A stretch of 64,000 bases of DNA from Trichosphaerium sp. ATCC 40318 (lineage: Eukaryota; Protista; Tubulinea), in the NCBI GenBank assembly GCA_038496445.1, contig JALMLS010000062.1, positions 558,001 through 622,000 of the forward strand, given 5' to 3'. Shown here in pieces: positions 778 through 30,915 of this stretch. The stretch's first letter is position 1; each line of letters opens with the position of its first letter. Under the pieces are notes generated by a model that was not told the origin of the DNA, did no database searches, and saw only the letters and a program-made list of their open reading frames with translations. The translations under genes and the position numbers were made by a program.

Positions 778-3700
778 ATGAACATAGAACAAACAGAAGA
801 GGCCAAAAAGTTCTCTGCGTTGGGAGACGCATCATATATCATTAATTCAGAGCTTCAGCCTGATGAGAAGGGCTATGAGTTAAATGATTTTTATATGACG
901 AAATCGCTCTCAAGGGATCTATATAAGAGCAGACCAAATGATTTTAGATGTTCGGAGCTCATACCTTTGCCTAATGCATTGCGAGAACAATTTCAATGTA
1001 AAATACGTTTTTTATGACGTTTATGCGCTTACCAAGGTAATAGATATGCAATGTAAGAGTTTTATGGGCATGTTTCCTGAAATACAACGAGCATGGCTAA
1101 CATTTGATCATAAACTCTTCCTATGGGACTATGTTAACGGGTACAGTGTTTTTGAAGCGCCATGACAGCAAAAGTTGATTACTCCTTGAACAGGTCGAGT
1201 TATGAATCATACGGCGGCTTGGACCAAATAATCAGCGCAGTAGCATTGGTAACACCAAAACCATCAGTATTCGTGTACGTCAGCTTTTAAAATATTTTAG
1301 CGTAAAAAAGTACCCTGGCGATCTCGTGGTCGCTGTGTTATTACTTTGGCGTCAATAAGAAAAACTTTTTAAAACAAAATGTCTGTTTTCAACAAATACG
1401 CTCATACGCCCTTATAAACAAAAAAACCAACGATTATATCTTAAACAAAACATTTAAAAACGGTTTAACTCTTTCGACGCGCAAATTTCAAAAATCAGCC
1501 TAAACACGCCTCTAAACAATATACAGGCCTGAAGTAAAACATCTCCTTATAGTAGGTACGCTAATAAACGCTTATACGTCATTTTTTGGCTGTCAAACCA
1601 AAAAACAATTCTTTACGTTGCATAAAGCCTCCTATATAGCTCATACGCGCTTAAAAAAATACTACGTATGATTGACATGTTTATTCAAGCGACTACTGTG
1701 GAAATTGTGATCATCGCCGTCCTTAAAAACCCCAACAACCCTCGGGATCTTAAACTTCGTGCCAGTACGTTTTAACAAATTTATATACACAGGATTAAGT
1801 GTTATTGCATTAAAACCATGAAACACATGTGTCACAGCATTTTTAATGTACCATTTCTGACGTTTTTTGTCTTTTAGCGAACTTCAGTTGTGGTACTGAT
1901 AATGTCAATATGACAAAGATTGTTGGCACAAAGAATGGTAGAATATTCGCAAGTGGTGTTGATGGACACTTATACGAAGTACATTATCGTCCTGAGAGTG
2001 GATGGTTTAATGGTAAAATGTGGAAAACTGCTGTTACAAATTTTACGACAACTTGGAATGTACCTCAGTTAGAATCTGTTACTAGTTGGCTTGGGTAAGT
2101 TGTTATTATGTCAATATTATAGGGTTGATATACTGATATTATGGGTAAACTTAGGTTCACTGGTGTCGATGCTTTGGTTGATATGTGTGTTGATGAAACG
2201 CGTCAAATTTTATATACTTGTTCAAAGAATTCTAGAATTGTTTGTTATGATCTTGGAGCAAAAGGTGATACCATACGCCGTGTTGCACAATATTTTTGTA
2301 CTTCAGCGCCAGTATTTGGTCATGGTGTTAGCGTACCACAGAAGATGGTATGTGTTTGTTTCAGCAAAAGACAAAAAAAAGCAAATCAACCTAATATTTA
2401 CTGTAGTCATTGCGTGCTGTTGGTATAAGTCCTGTCACAATCAATGAATCTGGACCTATTCATCTTGTTATAACTACACGCTCTGGTATAAGAATGTTCT
2501 TTACTACACTAACTGGGCCTGGTCAGAGCAGGGTGCGAAAAAACTCAAAAACAAACCAAAACTGTTGACACTTTATAAAGCATTACAGACTTGCTGATGA
2601 TAGACCAACTACATTGAGATTATTACATACACGTTTGATTGATGGATTACAGAGTCCTTTACTTCAGTCGGACACAGCTAGTACGTTTTAGTTTGTAATG
2701 AAATTTCATTGTTTTTTTTGAAATTTTTCCTTTTTGCTTACTGTTATCTTTGTAGCTTCTGTTCATGAAACGCATTATAGTCTTGGTACTACATTTATGG
2801 CTGATGCTATAACACCTGTACGTTTTTTTTTTTCCAATAATTTTTTAATAGGTGACATTTGAGCTCATTTCTTTCCTTCTCTAGGGTACAGATGCACTTT
2901 TGTGCTTTTCTGCCAATTTTTCAGAATCCACAACTACCCCTGATCCAAATAAAATTCCTATGCTCAATGAGTCATTGACAGAATTATATAATGTTATTGA
3001 GGTGCGTATTATAAGCTTTATTTTAGGAGCAGCAGCGAGTGTTTCTATTCACTTCCTTGATTCCAAAACCTTTTTTCCTTACACACTTTCTAGATGCCAG
3101 GTAAAATATGGTCAATAGTAGAAAATCGCTCAATGGAAGAAATCCTTTTCGAAGATAGCCTTAGAAGGTAAGTGTCTCAACTTTTAGTTCAAATTCTTCT
3201 CTTTTCTACCCCCGCGCTTGCAAGTATTGTTTTACAAGCAAAATAAAATGCAAGGCGTTTCTGTGAGGTGGAAAAACAAAGAGAAAAACGATTTGACCTG
3301 TATCAGAATTTCTTGAGATTTATGAACTCTAACAACGAGTAGGTCTCCTTCTCATGGTAGAGTTCCTGTACGAATTGTAATGAATTCAGAGCTTGCTACA
3401 CAACATGCTATTCCTGCTCGGCGATTTTTATGTCTATGGAATGGTGGTACGTGTTTTTTTTTTCTGACTTTTTCTCTGCTCGTTTTTTTGTTGATTTTCG
3501 TATCTGTTGTTTATTTTGGCTTTTAGGTATTTTTGATATTGTAAAACAACGCCCTGTCGATACACTCAAACGCATTCTCGAAGAAGGAAACTCAGCGGAG
3601 CTTAATGTACGAACATTAAACTAAAGAGACATGTTTTGATTTTTTTGTAAAATGCAAACTGACCAATCAAAAACAGGGATTCATTCAGGCTTATTCTATC

Positions 3701-6700
3701 CATCAAGTACTAGCAATGTCACTAGTTATTATATGTTGCAGAGAATCATTCGTTGAAGGATCTTTTGCCACTGTTGGGTTAGGTATAACTTTTTTGGTTT
3801 CTATCGAACCTTTTTTTTTTTTCTTGGTATTGTTTTCTCTTATGCTCACTATTTCTATCAGCGCAAACTGCTCATGCTAGAGAGCTTGCAAAAGCATTCT
3901 TTTTTCAAAACGCAGGACAAGCAGGTGTACATAGTAGCAATGGTACTATGTGTGTACGTACTGAGTATTATTCTCAAAAAATTCCTTTTTTTTTTCTTTG
4001 ACAGTTTGGGTCTCTAAGTATTTTTTTAGCTTATGTACTCTCCTGGGCAATGTGCACTCAGCACACATATGGCTCGTGTATTGAGACCAATATGGACTGA
4101 ATCTATAATCATTAAAGTCAGCAAAGAGACTATCTACAGTGAGATGGCATACGCAGAATACGTTCCTTATGTTAATGAATATCATCAAAACAGGTACGTT
4201 TTGTAATGGCAACCAAAAACCAACAAATTTGTCCTTGGGCTATTTGTATCATTGTTAACTGTATTCTAGTGATGACCCTATATTTGTGTGTCGTCTAAGT
4301 AGCGAACAATTGCGTAGTATAGAAACACAACTGAACGGCATAAAATTGTTCCTTGAAGAGAGTATCCTTTTTTTTTTTTATTTTTTTTCGAGATAGAGAC
4401 TCGAGTTTGTTCTTTGTTTCTTTGAACCCTCTTTCTGTTTTTTTCTTTCTTGGCCTTGACTTGTTTTAAAGATAATCAATTCGCTCCTATCAGACCTTAT
4501 ACTGAAATACCTCCTACACTTAGTCATCAACAAAAAGCGAACCTTCAAGATCAACAAGCAAAATCAAATATGCACTTACTTTTGCTTCATACACTAGAGT
4601 TTGTTGCATTGCTTCGTCTTCTTGTAGATAATATCATACCACTCATCATAAAGGAGTATGTGTTATCCACGTTATTCAGTGTATTCTTTATTGACGTTTC
4701 TTGTTAGGCTTCCAGAAGCACTTGGAAAGCGATTGAATGGCGTCAAATTTAATCAATACTTGATAGAGACTAGTGGAAGATTACTTACTGGTGAGATTAT
4801 TCGTGCATTGATACAGGTTGCTCAAAGATCTGACTCTGTAGTACGTATCATTACTTTTAAAATACTTGATTTTATCACGTGTTTGTGGCGTTGTTTTGGC
4901 GTTTTCTTAGAACAGAACGTTTCTATGAAGTTGGGTTTTGTGATTTATAATTGGTTTTAGCATAATGCGAGCATCAGCGATAAATTAAAGAGTAGATGTA
5001 AAAATCTATTCTCAGATCAAGAGCGTACTATATATAGAGGTATTGAGCTACTTAACATGGCAAAAACTACACAAAATATCGAACAAAGAGATCAATTCCT
5101 TAGAAGCTCATTGCAGGTAGGAATTTATTTATTTTTTATTTGTCTTTTGAATACTGGAATTTATATTGTATTTTTGCTGTTTGTTACATATTTATTGCAT
5201 ACACTATTGTGCTGTGGAACAATTTTGTTTGGTTTTTTAAAACTGATTTTCTTTGGATGGTGTTATTGATTGTTTCTTTACTTTTATTTTTTAATGTGTT
5301 GACAATCCTTTGTAGTTATTTTGTCGTTGTCCTGGTGGTTTGGAATTATCGAATATAATGGCTAGTTATCGGTATTTACGTTTTTATGATGGTGTTATAC
5401 AGCTTGCCATCAGAAGTGCACAATGTTATGATCCTACAGGCAAGTGCATAAACCCTTTTTTCCCACTTTTTTCCGAAGTATTAATTTCTGTTTCGTTTTA
5501 GATTCTGCTTTGGTTTTCTTTAAGAACGCACAAGATATGACAGACTTACAAAGAAAGAATACTCATGATAAATACAGTTATCGTTGTCTTTGTTATAAGT
5601 ACATTTTTGATGCAATGACACAAGACCTTATGGTTGTGGAGGATAACCAATCAGGTACAGCTAACAATCGCACTTTTTCTTCTTATTAATGTCTTTTAGA
5701 ATACAGTATGCCTGACGATCCAGCCACTGGTCGCCCATTCCCTAAGAGGCCTCCTATAACAGCTCGCAACAGAGAGGTGCGTGAGAGAGTGTTGACTTGG
5801 TTTTTTTTTTCGTAATTTCTTATGTGATACTAGTTTCTCAAGAAGAACTTCGTTATTACTTGTCTTGGTGCTGATGATGAACTGTTCCATTATATTTTAT
5901 ACCAATGGTGGTTGGACAATGGTGGTATGAACCACTTACTTCACGTACGTACATAGATAGACAAGGAGTATTGTTAGTTTGTTTTTTTCTGGCTTACATT
6001 AATTTTTTTTACAGTTTCAACCTTTGTACATGGAGGAGTTCTTGAGGCACTACTGTCCTGATGAGACTGATGCAAAAGATATTCTATGGAGGTATTACAT
6101 TACTCCAGGTATTGATCGATACTCCGATGCTGCATTCTCGTTGTATGAGACCGGAAGCAAAGAGTGCGTACCTTTTTCACTTTTGCCACTTCAGCTTTCT
6201 CCTTAATCGTTCTAACACCTCTGCAGTTCGGACCACTTAATTTTGGAAGATAGAATGGAATACCTTGCTAAAGCCAGAGCATATGCACAACACAGTATGG
6301 AACAAAGTACGTACCCTGAAAGCTTTTATCCTTTAAACGAAATTTGAAGATTTTCGCAAAGCTATTGGACTCTTTGCCCTTTTAAGTTGGTTAATTACTC
6401 ATTTCTCATAGACAATGTCGATAAAAGTCAGTCAAAGATGACAACAGATGTTCTGAGAGCAATTGAAACGAGTATACAAGTGCTAACTGTACAGAGAAAA
6501 ATCAGAGAAGAATTAGCAAATAGCGAGCAAGTTCCTGATATTAAAGCTGCTGCCTTGCATGATCTTAACCATAGAGTGCATCCTTTGGATACTGTACGTT
6601 GTATTTGATACAAACACGATGCACATAAGCATCATACAACACCTCATCAGCTGATTTTTCTTTTTAGTTGCTTAACACATATGCGGTTAAGTTTGTACTC

Positions 6701-24873: not shown

Positions 24874-26407
24874 TTATTCTTCTTTCTTTTCCTCTTCTTT
24901 TTCTTCTTCTTTTTTATCTTCAGCCGACTCATCCTTTGCTTCCTCTTCTTTAGCATCATCAGTATTTTCTGCTTTATCTTCACTACTCTTTTCAACTTGT
25001 TTTGGCTCGTTAGGCTTCTTATCTTCCTTTTTGAGAGTCTCCGTGATGAAGTTGTGATTAGTGTAAACGCACATATCAGCTGCGATTGTCATTGCTTTTT
25101 TACAAATTTCTTCAGCAGACAAGTCGGAATCAATGAGTGCGCGTGCTGCAGCTTTAGCAAACATACTACCTGATCCAATAGAGGTAATACCATCATCAGA
25201 TTCCAAAACGTTTCCTGTATAAACACATCAGAGCGAAGAATAATTAAAAAAAAAATTTACAAGTTTTTGTTTTGCAATGCGTTTTTAAACATACCGTGTC
25301 CGTCAACTTCATAGGTATTGTGTTCATCACTTACGCATCTATATTTTGTAAGTTATGTAATCTTCTTATTGCGTTTAATGGTCATTAAAGCGAAAAAAAA
25401 ATACAATTTGTTTTGATATTCTAGCTGTATTTCTATCACGTACAAAGAGGCGTTAAGGTGGCGTAAATACTTATCTGTACGCCATAATTTTGATAAACCA
25501 ACTGCAGCTTGTAAAAGTTGCCCTAAAGCAATTATAAGAAACATACAACGGCACGTGTTGGAACTTTTTTGAGTCCAATATCATTTCTTTTGTTTTGAAC
25601 TATATTGCAAAATATAACCTTTGACGTACCGCTATGCTCATCTAATTGAGCTTCTAAGCGCTCAATGAGCGCAAAGCAATCAGCTGTTGCACCTATACAA
25701 CGTGTTATCGTAATGTACTTCAAAAATTCGATAAAAGTTGTTTTTTTCCTCTTTTCGTTTTGGTTGTATTTTGTGACATTTTTTTTGTAGTTTGCGTTGT
25801 AGATGAGCAACAATTAAATGGTTCGTACCAGCCATGCCAATAATAATTTCATTATTTTGAATGCGTCTTACTTTTCTGGCAGTACCCTTTACTACTACGC
25901 TTCCAGCAGTGACTTGTCCGTCGCCCATTGTTACCTTTTTGAAGCGTAAGACTACAGATAAATTGATGAAATAACAGGCGGAAAATAAAACTGTCTGGTG
26001 CATTGTATGCTCTCACAAGAGATGTGAAGACGCTATACTAAAATTTTGTGGAGAATTACTGTCGTTTTGTAGGTTTTCTAACGAGAGACCGCTCAAGAGC
26101 GTATTAAGCGCCTGTTAATTACTTTTAGAGTACGTACAACTTCGTTGTTCTTTCTGACGGATAAAATTGTTGTGGCATGCCAAGCTCCTTGCTATATCAA
26201 ACGTATTAGTTACAAATAATATTATGGTTGAGAACTGAGTGAGTTCGCTATAGACTTTAATTGTACCTCAGTTGGCAATGGACCTGCGCGAGGTTGCGAA
26301 TAACCACCATGTCGTCTTATTGTAACACGGTTGGAGTTTTTTGGTTGTGCTTTGACTCTATTCGCCCGAGATAATATTCCAATACGAGTAGAGGCACCCA
26401 ACATCAT
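24874..26407 (-). CDS. hslV: Mitochondrial ATP-dependent protease subunit HslV (ClpQ)
   Basis: Arg-rich presequence, then [55 protein letters not shown]. Acidic/lysine-rich tail. Confidence 0.95.
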
Positions 26408-26661
26408 TATAAAATACGTAAATACGAGTTTAACTCTAAACTGAAACAGTTTGTTAAGTCTCCAGCTGAGGCTCAAAAACGGCAAACAAGCCGCCAGTAC
26501 AATCAAGGCATGCCTAGGTTGCAGCATATAAACGTAATATGTTGATACGTGTCAGGTAGATTGTTATGTTGTTTGTTGTCTAGTGTTCATACTGGCGTCA
26601 TTGTTTGATAGTGTCAACCTTTGACATTAAGTCAAATTAGTTTTGTTCTTGTTACAGCGGA

Positions 26662-29532
26662 ATGTTAGCGTTACGGCACCTGCAAGCAAGGACCGTTCGT
26701 AAAGTGCGCATTAAAGCGTCTAAAACGTCAGTGCGGCGTTGTTCGCTTGCTGGCTTGTCTCCAAATGCCCAAGAGCACATAAAGAAGGTGCGGGACGAAG
26801 TATACGCGTATGAGGACATGGAGAACATGAAATCAAACTATTTGCGTAATGCTGCCACCTGGTGTTACAAGATAGCTACGAAATGGACAATAAAAGAAGT
26901 GGAGAGGCCTACAGTAGAGCAAATAGATCAAAGTACTTGTGGCTACTGTACAACGGTCAATATGAACTAACGTGTATAGTGGACACTGAAAAGCAGTTGA
27001 AATGGGCTACAACAATGCTGAATTTCAACATGTACCCACCAGATATTGAATACGCTGTCAATTGGTTAAAAGAGCTCGCGTATCAGCAAGGCACGCTCAA
27101 TAACTAGTACAACAAAAAACTAAGTAAGTTTAGATAGCGCAGACGCTAAATTCGGTACGAGGATGGTGACCAGCCTTGCGTAGTCTTTTTTATACACCAG
27201 GCAGCTTGGTTGCGTTGATACGGCGTGAATTAACTGTTTTTTTTTGTAGCTTTGTCTCAATTCTACGGAACAACGCGATACGCTCAATTACGTGATGAAA
27301 GAAAGCGTGGTTTGATATTATTCGATTTAACTGAGATTCATAAGCATCCACAAGCACTTGTACGTTAAAACAATGAGAAAGGTGTCGCTAGATTTATCTT
27401 TAAAACTCTCTCAAAGAGTCGTTCCTTTTTTTTTTTCAAATGCTTTTCGTTTCTTTTGATCGAGTCTGCGTAACCCTTATTTGCTTTAAATAGGAGATGA
27501 TGGCTTCAATGAAGCTAAGGTTAGGTGTTCTACCTCTTGCTGAGAAGGCTAATGTGTTGAGTGATATGAAGATTGCTGCGGATTCTGGTGTAAGAATCCC
27601 TTTTTTTTTTGCTATGAAAGGAAGCCATCCCTCTAAGATTTCTAACTTGTAGAGTGCTTCAGGATGTTATAGTTACTATAAATTACTCAAACAGATATAC
27701 CCTGACAAACACGAGGAATTAACAGAGTATTTAGAAAGAGCAGCATCGAAGGTAAGGAATTTTTATAATCAGTGCTTTTTTCTGATTGTATTTCTTAAGG
27801 GTAACCTCGAAGCCATGAAATTAGTTACGGACTACCACCAAGACTCAGAATTAGTATTAAAATATACTATACAGGCGCGCTAATAACTAATAAGCACTTA
27901 TATAACTAACATAGTTAAGTGTGCAAAGGGTGGTGATGGTGACAGCCTTGTCAAGTACGATTTGGCTTTTTGTTTACAAATGTTTTTTTTACTAAAAGTT
28001 CTTCAGGCTTGGAAACATGTATGAGCTTGGAACGCCCATGGTAAAAAAAGATGAACTTCGTGCTGCAATGTGTTATATGCGCGGAACTTTCCAAGCAAAG
28101 CACTGGGATGCTCAAGTACGTCTTTCATGGAAAAAACCTTAAAAATTAACGATTCATTAGCTAAGTCTCATTCGATGCTTGGCGAAGGGTATTGGCTTCA
28201 GTAAATGTCTAACAACTGCTAATATTTACATGCAAGATGTATGTTTAGTTGGTTGTAAACCAGTCCATGGAGCAACCTTTTTTAAGCACGTCTTGCAACG
28301 TTTATTGACTCTCAGTTTAGTTGTGGTATTGTAGTAGTTTATGGCAAAGAGAAAAGATGCAAGATGAACTCAAAAGGCTTGGAATAAGTGTGTTTGAAGG
28401 CGCTGATGCTGGATCTGTTATAAACGAGAAGTATAGTGATGATAGCTTTATTGAGAGGGAAAAACAACGCAGTAAACAAAATGAAACGTATCAAGAAGCT
28501 TTAAAGAGATTCGAAGAAGATCTTGCTAAGAGAAAGGCAGAAGCAGAAAAGAAACTTAAAAAGAAAGAAGAAATAAAGAAAAGGATAAAGGGAGAGTTAC
28601 CTAAAAGATATAAGAAGCCAAAGAGGGAGTTGGATTTACAATTTGAACAAGGAGTAAGTTTTTGGGTTTTTTTTTCGAAAGTTTTGATTTCGTTTACCTG
28701 CCTTTTTAATCTTTCTTATAGAAACCTAAAGATACTACTGACTACTTAAAATATCCAGAAAAGTATAAACAATATATTATAGAAGATACAGATGACTACA
28801 TTGTCATAGAGCGTACGTACAATTGCTTGCTTTTTCATCTTTTTTCATTTTCTCAACGAAGTTGTCATTTAATCTCCGTACTCTTATTCTCTAACATCAG
28901 TTTCTAATACTTTATTAAGCAATACAAAGAGTATCTCATACTCACTACTACGTGATTCCAAAGTTAGATAAAAATGTAACTAAGTACGAGCACATAACAA
29001 CAAAGCATGTACCGAAACTACAAGCAGCGAACAACAAAGCGAAGGAGATCATTCAAACTGAGTCTCAGAAGCATACTGGTCGTCGTGCTGAGTTTAAAAA
29101 AGGCTTTATAGCTGTACCACATGAAAGTCATGTTTGTATTCACGTGGTGTCAACAGGTACACATCCGTAATTTTTTTCTTATTTTTTTCTAATTTTTGTA
29201 TCAACAGATTTTGAGTTTGTCTCTTCGATACGTGCTTGGAATTGCTTCAATACAGATCTATTTATGGATGCTGATGAACTTATAAAAGGTGTAGAAGAAG
29301 GTGGTCAACTAAATGTACGTAATGGTTACTACTAATGAACGCGGCTTCGTTTAGTTGATTTTTTTTTAAGATTGATCGAGATGAGATTATGCCTTTGTAT
29401 AGGCAAGGGTATGCAGAATATGATGGTACAACGTACCGATTCCTTACATCTTTAACTACACATTATTTTTTGAATGATCCAGAAGTCCTCTGGAAGAAAG
29501 ACTTTGAAGAATCCAATCAAGAAAACAAATAA
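26662..29532 (+). CDS. Sel1-like repeat + coiled coil + degenerate aprataxin-like HIT domain protein, probably mitochondrial
   Basis: Arg-rich N-terminus without acidic residues. SLR motifs YLERAASKGNLEAM and LGNMYELG..VKKDELRAAMCY. C-terminal THYYVIP...FKKGFIAVPHESHVCIHVVSTDF...WNCFNTDLF aligns with aprataxin. Confidence 0.75.
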
Positions 29533-29648: not shown

Positions 29649-29752
29649 TGGAACAGGTAACATGACACTGTAATTTCATAGCGAAGCCTATTTTGCCGCT
29701 GGAACAGGTAACATGACACTGTAATTTCATAGCGAAGCCTATTTTGCCGCTG
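29649..29752. repeat. Perfect 51-bp direct tandem duplication
   Basis: TGGAACAGGTAACATGACACTGTAATTTCATAGCGAAGCCTATTTTGCCGC occurs at 29649 and 29700. Confidence 0.95.
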
Positions 29753-29908
29753 AAAATTAAGGTGTTTTTCAGTCAATGTATTTCCTGTAAACCGAGCAAA
29801 AAACAAGTTCCTTATTCGTTACTAAACTTCCACATGCGCTCTGTGGCCGAAATACAGGTTAGCGAAGAGCTTGAAACTAATGATAGTGTACAAAACAACA
29901 AAAGAAAA

Positions 29909-30915
29909 ATGACTACGTTATTTTCACGTTTCTCGCATCTACTAGGCCTCCCAGTGGAGTTACATAGCGAAATAGTTGATTTAGACGACGATTTGGATTT
30001 ACTTTGGCCAATCTTATCAAAACGCACAGCAACGACAACAAGGTTTGATTCAGAGTTAAACAGACATGGTAAATGGTTTAGACATAACAGCAGAGGTCAT
30101 CTTTTGGAGGAGTGTAATTATTCTAACGGTAAAATTGACGGAGAACGGTTTTGTGTTTGTAGTGAAGGAAGAGAATGGAAACAGTTCTATTATGTCAAAG
30201 GCAAAAAACATGGAGAGTATAAAAGATGGCATGATGAGCAATTAAGGGAACAATGTAATTATGTTGATGATAAGCGTGATGGAGAGTATATGTTCTTTTA
30301 TCCAAATGGAGAACTTAAATCATCATGTAATTATGTTAATGATATCCGAGATGGAGAATACAAAAAGTGGAAAGAAAACGGAATATTATCTGAGCAGTGC
30401 TTTTACAGCAATAATGAATTACATGGTGAGAGCAAGAGATAGTATGAAAACGGTACAATGGCGTGTGAGTGTAAGTATGTAAAAGATAAGCTAGAAGGAG
30501 AGTACAAGACATGGTTTTCCAATGAACAGTTAGAAGAGAAGTGCTATTACAACGATGGCGAGCGTGAAGGAGAAAGGCAAAGTTGGTATCGTGATGTACA
30601 GAGGCATAGGCATTGTTGCTATGCCAACGGTAAGCTAGAAGGAGAATACAAGCATTGGTATAGAGGAGGACAAATAGCTAGCAAAGCAATTATGTTGCTG
30701 GTAGGCTAGACGGAGAGTACAAGACATGGTTTTCCAATGGACAGTTAGAAGAGAAGCGCTATTACAACAATGGCAAGCGTGAAGGAGAAAGTCAAAGTTG
30801 GTATCGTGATGGACAGAGGCATGAGCACTGTCGCTACACCAATGGTAATCTCGAAGAAGAGTGCCAAGTATTGGATTATATTGTTGATATTGATGCAACT
30901 AAGAAATATGAATAA
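29909..30915 (+). pseudogene. F-box-like + MORN_2 repeat pseudogene
   Basis: HLLGLPVELHSEI...WPILSKR plus MORN repeats. In-frame TAG at 30440-30442 where Trp is expected (KR*YENG). 1-nt deletion near 30680. Internal duplication 30490/30705. Confidence 0.82.

Follow-up and report, generated by a model that had tools for sequence, protein, structure and literature searches.

The 64,000-nucleotide window analysed here comes from the amoeba Trichosphaerium sp. ATCC 40318 (assembly GCA_038496445.1, contig JALMLS010000062.1, positions 558,001–622,000 of the forward strand) and holds, at window positions 26662–29532 on the + strand, a real, intact and spliced gene of ~15 exons and ~635 residues, as read in three frames with phase arithmetic. 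Its C-terminal part is an aprataxin-type histidine triad (HIT) domain, judging by sequence matches and a fragment model, with a cysteine at the position of the catalytic nucleophile. Its N-terminal two thirds can fairly be described, from their sequence, as degenerate Sel1-like helical repeats. Giving belief and doubt about equal weight, we suggest that this intact, expressed and lineage-restricted aprataxin paralogue bears, on a scaffold, a HIT module that is non-catalytic and resembles a substrate trap.

An aprataxin-type HIT domain

Similarity searches and fold predictions were run exon by exon, and codons split by introns were translated singly. The exon that encodes the HIT core (exon 13, 28920–29156), searched alone against Pfam, matches DcpS_C (PF11969) at 35.8 bits (E=1.3e-8), above the gathering cut-off of 24 and therefore more than a chance resemblance. 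Against all PDB sequences (HMMER) it retrieves aprataxin chains alone, while for exon 14 (29208–29314) aprataxin is the best match (E=0.035), with two designed proteins behind it at weaker E-values. Both exons are colinear on the aprataxin chain (residues 38–105 and 117–143), at individual E-values that are weak (0.035–0.8). In these alignments 'rawncfntdlf' is set against aprataxin 'KHWNSFNTEYF', and 'gfiavpheshvcihvvs' lies opposite the active-site stretch of human aprataxin. The last exon (29371–29529) has no match among PDB sequences.

An AlphaFold2 model of exon 13, made from a two-sequence alignment, has a mean predicted local distance difference test score (pLDDT) of 71 and a strand-helix-strand-strand order. 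Foldseek comparison of this fragment with the PDB returned almost entirely Hint and aprataxin structures, no E-value reaching 0.001, and the best fit was to aprataxin (template modelling (TM) score by query 0.58–0.61, root-mean-square deviation 3.4–3.6 Å, 70 columns). The three best-ranked entries for the same model in the ESM Atlas were HIT, aprataxin and HIT clusters (TM 0.64–0.67). A sequence-only reading of this DNA had proposed an aprataxin-like C-terminus; the Pfam match, the aprataxin matches of two exons and the fold matches bear it out, the agreement with the HIT fold being that of the exon 13 fragment, and the peptides quoted in that reading are present in exons 13 and 14.

Active-site residues

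The triad of the window gene reads H-V-C-I-H. An in-frame TGT codon at 29135–29137, between CAT-GTT and ATT-CAC, places Cys opposite human His260, the nucleophile of aprataxin (PMC6043908), and an ATA codon at 29108–29110 places Ile opposite human His251 (GFIAVP, compared with GYHAIP and GFHAVP). Both replacements had been claimed from the sequence alone and are confirmed at these codons. Since a His codon (CAY) lies two base changes from Cys (TGY) and likewise two from Ile (ATH), neither residue is a simple sequencing slip. BLASTP pairs the altered triad region with GFHAVPSMAHLHMHIIS of the genome's own canonical aprataxin. Position by position, the active site compares as follows:

Human aprataxin His201: His in the window gene, within THYYVIP; kept
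Human aprataxin His251: Ile (ATA, 29108–29110); changed
Human aprataxin Ser255: His; changed
Human aprataxin Ser257: Ser; kept
Human aprataxin His258: His; kept
Human aprataxin His260: Cys (TGT, 29135–29137); changed
Human aprataxin His262: His, the last of HVCIH; kept

In aprataxin, a charge relay runs from the Lys197 backbone through His201 and His262 to the scissile phosphate (PMC6043908), and alignments to both human aprataxin and the paralogue show the equivalents of His201 and His262 to be retained. The aprataxin-specific WNSFNT motif is kept as WNCFNT (AWNCFNT, against HWNSFNT in aprataxin and HWNSFTT in the paralogue). The wedge helix of aprataxin carries His166 and Trp167 (PMC6043908); here Gly-Lys stands opposite the Gly-Trp of the paralogue, in a short and weak BLASTP alignment of exon 12 that was extended by eye.

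Origin from the resident aprataxin gene

The genome (70 Mb, 642 contigs) contains exactly two PF11969 matches, the window gene and a locus on contig C19 (+ strand, about 2880–5920 within C19:421000–429000; DcpS_C 75.5 bits) whose triad is canonical, HLHMH (FHAVPSMAHLHMHIISQ). Each of exons 12, 13 and 14 of the window gene has its counterpart in a run of three adjacent C19 exons (36%, 38% and 43% identity, respectively). Two exon boundaries could be located in the one gene as well as in the other, and they agree in residue and in phase (phase 1): VIE/P in the window gene against VIK/D in the C19 gene, and VST/D against ISQ/D. These shared intron positions and phases point to duplication inside the genome, not to a retrocopy or a transfer, and by sequence comparison the window gene is a paralogue of the genome's own aprataxin gene.

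At C19 the final exon (…DLLKSPLYFKGDAYKNMPALKKALANRL) is likewise without Cys/His zinc ligands. By eye, 'PLY..G.A' is common to both paralogues, at the place where human aprataxin reads 'PLRCHEC'. Since ligands are absent from both paralogues, the zinc finger had probably gone by the time of the duplication, and its absence is probably a trait of the lineage. The CxxC zinc finger, described as lost from the window gene when only the sequence had been read, is indeed missing from the last exon, but we reject the loss as a peculiarity of this gene because the canonical HxHxH copy shares it.

Upstream of the C19 HIT exons, on the same strand, further exons look by eye FHA-like (…GTNPSWIGKRG…DILYLLP…) and macro-domain-like (…VIHVLGPNMNP…); against Pfam they gave nothing at E≤0.01.

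Gene structure

The window has ~36% G+C and its introns are short (43–134 nt). An ATG at 26662 and a TAA at 29530–29532 are consistent with an open, in-phase exon model. All introns are GT-AG except 27091–27133, where a GC donor is required to keep the frame. The putative GC-AG introns number two, 27091–27133 (GCACGC, 43 nt) and 27875–27919 (GCGCGC, 45 nt), both lying outside the RNA cover described below. The exons, all on the + strand, are:

26662–26861, +, exon 1: ATG, basic acid-free N-terminus of 37 residues and first helical-repeat residues; donor GTGTTA; predicted from open reading frame, phase and composition
26915–27090, +, exon 2: helical repeats, its end PPDIEYAVNWLKELAYQ resembling the second half of a Sel1 repeat (hhalign E=2.4e-3); GC donor GCACGC at 27091; predicted
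27134–27154, +, putative micro-exon of 21 nt: encodes (D)SADAKF(A); predicted from phase arithmetic and fit to the Sel1 consensus xxAQYxLGxxY
27250–27359, +, exon 4: degenerate helical repeat without a significant Sel1 match
27494–27589, +, exon 5: degenerate helical repeat
27653–27751, +, exon 6: degenerate helical repeat
27800–27853, +, exon 7: GT donor at 27854; alternative end at 27874 through the GC donor GCGCGC at 27875, adding VLKYTIQ
27920–27954, +, exon 8: start of the best Sel1-like repeat; 3' end joined to 28007 in record 1 of run X1
28007–28115, +, exon 9: best Sel1-like repeat (LGNMYELGTPMVKKDELRAAMCY...); Pfam Sel1 E=0.0012, 19.8 bits, below cut-off; junctions in RNA contigs
28161–28238, +, exon 10: last helical repeat; both junctions in X1 record 1
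28321–28653, +, exon 11: 111 residues with the terminal repeat helix, a disordered stretch and a lysine/glutamate-rich (K/E-rich) helix; both ends joined in RNA contigs
28722–28812, +, exon 12: strand region on the N-terminal side of the HIT domain (…DYLKYPEKYKQYIIEDTDDYIVIE); aligned with the canonical paralogue by BLASTP (E=1e-4); X1 record 3
28920–29156, +, exon 13: HIT core with THYYVIP, GFIAVPHES and HVCIH; translation ends ...AEFKKGFIAVPHESHVCIHVVST
29208–29314, +, exon 14: (D)FEFVSSIRAWNCFNTDLF..., the AWNCFNT motif and then a helix; donor GTACGT at 29315; junction 29156/29208 in an RNA contig
29371–29532, +, exon 15: C-terminal tail in the place of the zinc finger, with no Cys and a single His; TAA stop

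The putative micro-exon brings exons 2 and 4 back into Sel1 register. A longer variant of exon 7 was compared by hhalign, and the result did not separate the GT from the GC donor.

On the - strand at 25353–26016, divergent from the HIT gene and ~650 nt away, are exon pieces resembling an HslV/proteasome beta-type subunit (Pfam Proteasome E=0.0045, below cut-off). The next gene downstream (29744–30709, + strand) has MORN-type repeats (Pfam MORN_2 E=2.8e-12).

Transcript contigs

Parts of the locus are held by one public run (X1; word share 0.09), the "RNA" label of the record being a guess. As its contigs lack the introns, they are most simply RNA from a closely related strain. Record 1 runs through exons 8, 9, 10 and 11 (joints 27954/28007, 28115/28161 and 28238/28321), the joint 27954/28007 consisting of 14 loose letters identical to 27937–27950 followed by TCAA. 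Exon 11 is joined to exon 12 in record 3 (28653/28722), and exon 13 to exon 14 in record 4 (29156/29208). The cover excludes 26500–27997, 28813–29032 and 29294 onwards, so that exons 1–7 and the joint 28812/28920 lie outside it. Because these contigs bridge the exons and exon 11 is a single uninterrupted open reading frame, the last repeat exons, the K/E-rich helix and the HIT domain share a transcript. A cDNA check for a single transcript had been proposed, and the five spliced junctions support one; we reject the reading of two separate genes because the X1 contigs join the repeat exons through exon 11 to the HIT exons.

Of five interpretable differences between X1 and the window, 29087 G>T alone changes an amino acid (Ala to Ser). 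The others, 28163 A>C, 28653 A>C, 29086 T>C and 29104 C>G, are synonymous, and the five together fit constraint. The Cys codon is covered by record 4, in which no difference from the window is reported at it.

Two further features of the X1 contigs were seen. At 28547–28589, in the K/E-rich stretch, some contigs have a joint that goes back 42 letters and A-rich loose ends, most likely low-complexity cross-matches and not a rearrangement. One contig fits as far as 29203, within intron 29157–29207, and continues with 255 unlike letters, at a higher bin depth (15.6); an unrelated T-rich match might explain it, as might a transcript that is alternative or unspliced.

Helical repeats, K/E-rich helix and N-terminus

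Searched exon by exon, Pfam recognises Sel1 (PF08238) in exon 9 alone, at 19.8 bits against a cut-off of 30.7. We built an own-genome profile from 14 strong Sel1 repeats for comparison by hhalign, the SLR consensus being xxAQYxLGxxYxxGxGVxxDxxxAxxWxxKAAxxG. Exon 9 fits its first half (E=3.6e-4), its second half is matched where exon 2 ends (E=2.4e-3), and the remaining repeat exons gave no match (E 0.025 or worse). The locus is not among the 50 Sel1 matches listed for the genome, no paralogue of the repeat region was found in the genome, and alignment of the repeat exons against each other (MAFFT) gave an uninformative 23% column identity. The test is conservative, because exons were searched singly and the repeats run across exon boundaries. 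The Sel1 repeats of the sequence-only reading are weakly supported: two half-repeats match the own-genome profile, none reaches the Pfam cut-off, and the other exons are unmatched.

In exon 11, AlphaFold2 predicts a short helix followed by disorder and then, with high confidence, a single helix of 52 residues (exon residues 40–91; mean pLDDT 81–96 in the 10-residue blocks that cover it). A K/E-rich helix had been expected here as a coiled coil, which we correct to a predicted single helix. The exon is 58% charged and contains two basic clusters resembling nuclear localisation signals (NLS), KKLKKKEEIKKRIK and PKRYKKPKRE.

The first 37 residues of the predicted exon 1 have a net charge of +9 and no Asp or Glu, a basic, acid-free composition that agrees with the mitochondrial presequence suggested earlier. 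Their hydrophobic moment is not above that of shuffled sequences (68% of shuffles reach it), and the NLS-like clusters of the linker compete with a presequence. Mitochondrion and nucleus are both candidate compartments on these sequence features, and we prefer neither.

Spread of the gene

Two strains show the gene, the source of this genome and the relative sequenced in run X1. A phmmer search with the HIT core exon (79 residues) against 1.84 billion representative proteins gave 0 matches at E≤1e-3. At this library size we estimate the threshold at ~45 bits; the own-genome paralogue scores 36 bits, and even canonical aprataxins would be missed, so that this blank excludes close orthologues only. 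Searches with this exon through contigs from metagenomes and from viruses yielded no relative, a search of the ESM Atlas by features gave no usable match, and a literature search found neither a combination of aprataxin with Sel1 nor a histidine triad pseudoenzyme. The sequence-only reading knew of no such architecture, and we too found none like it among representative proteins, metagenome and viral contigs, the Atlas feature search or the literature.

Comparison with known systems

Aprataxin (APTX/Hnt3), a HIT-Znf deadenylase acting on 5'-adenylated DNA and RNA-DNA, has the layout FHA-NLS-HIT. The window gene is like it in HIT subtype (PF11969) and in the motifs THxxVxP, EFxxGFxAVP, SHxxxHxxS and WNxFNT, and its exons follow those of the resident aprataxin gene in order and have intron positions in common with them; its order of interaction module, basic linker and HIT domain also resembles that layout. 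It differs from aprataxin in having Cys for His260, Ile for His251 and His for Ser255, in lacking zinc ligands (as does the canonical copy of this genome), in a Lys that the weak alignment puts at the wedge position of Trp167, and in an N-terminus of helical repeats instead of FHA.

Nucleophile mutants of HIT proteins, Fhit H96N among them, offer a second comparison. The PDB structures listed by Foldseek include Hint1 H112N mutants with intact substrate (5km6, 5ipc). If H112 is the Hint1 nucleophile, as we take it to be, substrate binding outlasts the loss of the nucleophile from a HIT site, and these mutants are an engineered counterpart of the window domain. In both, the nucleophilic His is gone and the remaining pocket is intact, and the mutants hold their substrate uncleaved, as the structure titles state. 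The mutants differ in being engineered, small Hint or Fhit proteins with Asn, whereas the window gene is natural, has Cys and belongs to the aprataxin branch.

With Sel1-like repeat (SLR) adaptors the window gene shares helical repeats of 30–36 residues, two segments of which fit LGxMYxxG...D...A and D...A..W..xA. Unlike theirs, its repeats all score below the Pfam gathering cut-off and most are unrecognisable. The literature search turned up no SLR protein that also has a HIT domain.

Proposed role and alternatives

On the reading we favour, the HIT module arose by duplication of the resident aprataxin gene. In place of the canonical N-terminal part, the window gene has degenerate Sel1-like repeats and a long helix, basic and K/E-rich, ~330 residues in all. 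The phosphate-binding and charge-relay set (the equivalents of His201, Ser257, His258 and His262, together with WNxFNT) is retained, and the domain would no longer turn over 5'-adenylated ends. With the nucleophile and His251 gone and this set kept, ligand binding without normal turnover seems to us the most likely outcome. The domain may then be a natural 'substrate-trap' that binds a ligand linked to adenosine monophosphate (AMP) or a nucleotide, tethered by the helical repeats to partner proteins.

Several points weigh against this proposal. Cys is itself a competent nucleophile, which makes the loss of catalysis a matter of inference. A Lys takes the position of the DNA-wedge Trp167 (in a weak alignment) and the tail has no zinc ligands, so that nucleic-acid binding may be gone as well; that would speak for a role that is structural only. 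The protein, metagenome and viral searches found no orthologue from another species that would show HxCxH to be conserved. The evidence for constraint is five substitutions in short contigs, and the 5' part of the model (exons 1–7, with one or two GC-AG introns and a 21-nt micro-exon) is without RNA support.

The competence of Cys leads directly to the possibility of an active enzyme with a thiol nucleophile, in which a Cys-S-AMP intermediate would replace His-N-AMP with help from the retained equivalents of His258, His262 and His201 and from a new loop His (VPHES). The phosphate-binding set is aligned unchanged apart from His251, a new His stands at the position of human Ser255, and two substitutions separate the Cys codon from His, with no difference reported at it in the second strain; thiol-phosphate intermediates are also established chemistry in other enzyme classes. 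We nevertheless consider such an enzyme unlikely: the literature search found no HIT enzyme with a Cys nucleophile, and His251, another active-site histidine, is replaced by Ile. A similarly doubtful alternative is that the former active site now has a metal-binding (Zn) or structural role, the HIT domain serving for protein-protein interaction or dimerisation at the end of a repeat scaffold. The alignment and fragment model would place His(255'), His258, Cys260 and His262 on one strand/loop face, a zinc-bound HIT structure exists (1kpc, PKCI-1 apo+zinc), and the residues for DNA engagement seem lost, the wedge Trp being opposite Lys in the weak alignment and the zinc finger absent. Retention of WNxFNT and of the His201–His262 relay speaks against a structural site, as it hints at continuing selection on the ligand pocket. 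We regard as quite improbable the more elaborate proposal that either chemistry, a Cys-AMP thiol nucleotidyl hydrolase or transferase or else a His3Cys metal site, would be delivered to the mitochondrion by the repeat scaffold to act as a sensor or processor of adenylated nucleic-acid ends.

The altered residues might instead reflect relaxed selection in a functionless duplicate that is decaying or drifting neutrally. The gene is single-copy, homologues outside the lineage were not detected in the protein, metagenome and viral searches, the 38% identity to the paralogue is a strong divergence and the repeats are degenerate. Against this, ~15 exons are all open with intact splice sites (GT-AG bar one or two GC-AG donors), a second strain transcribes the gene and splices it correctly, and four of the five strain differences are synonymous; decay is accordingly an explanation in which we place little belief. 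Hardly credible, finally, is an artefact of the gene model in which two neighbouring genes, one for a small HIT protein and one for a protein of repeats, were read as one. No single contig spans the whole gene, and the joint 28812/28920 and the junctions upstream of 27954 have no RNA cover, but X1 record 1 runs from exon 8 to exon 11, record 3 from exon 11 to the first HIT exon, and exon 11 is one open reading frame; across the uncovered joint, exons 12 and 13 are consecutive parts of a HIT domain with the intron positioned as in the paralogue.

Implications

The non-catalytic, ligand-binding HIT module is the preferred reading. The reach of the finding is limited, the gene being known from a single amoeba lineage with no orthologue detected elsewhere. 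HIT enzymes are textbook histidine-nucleophile catalysts. A selected and expressed HxCxH variant of aprataxin, if true, would be a pseudo-enzyme that reads adenylated ends instead of removing them or, alternatively, the first thiol-using member of the superfamily. Either class would be a natural experiment on what the nucleophile contributes, and the gene also illustrates how a DNA-repair module can be duplicated onto a new interaction scaffold.

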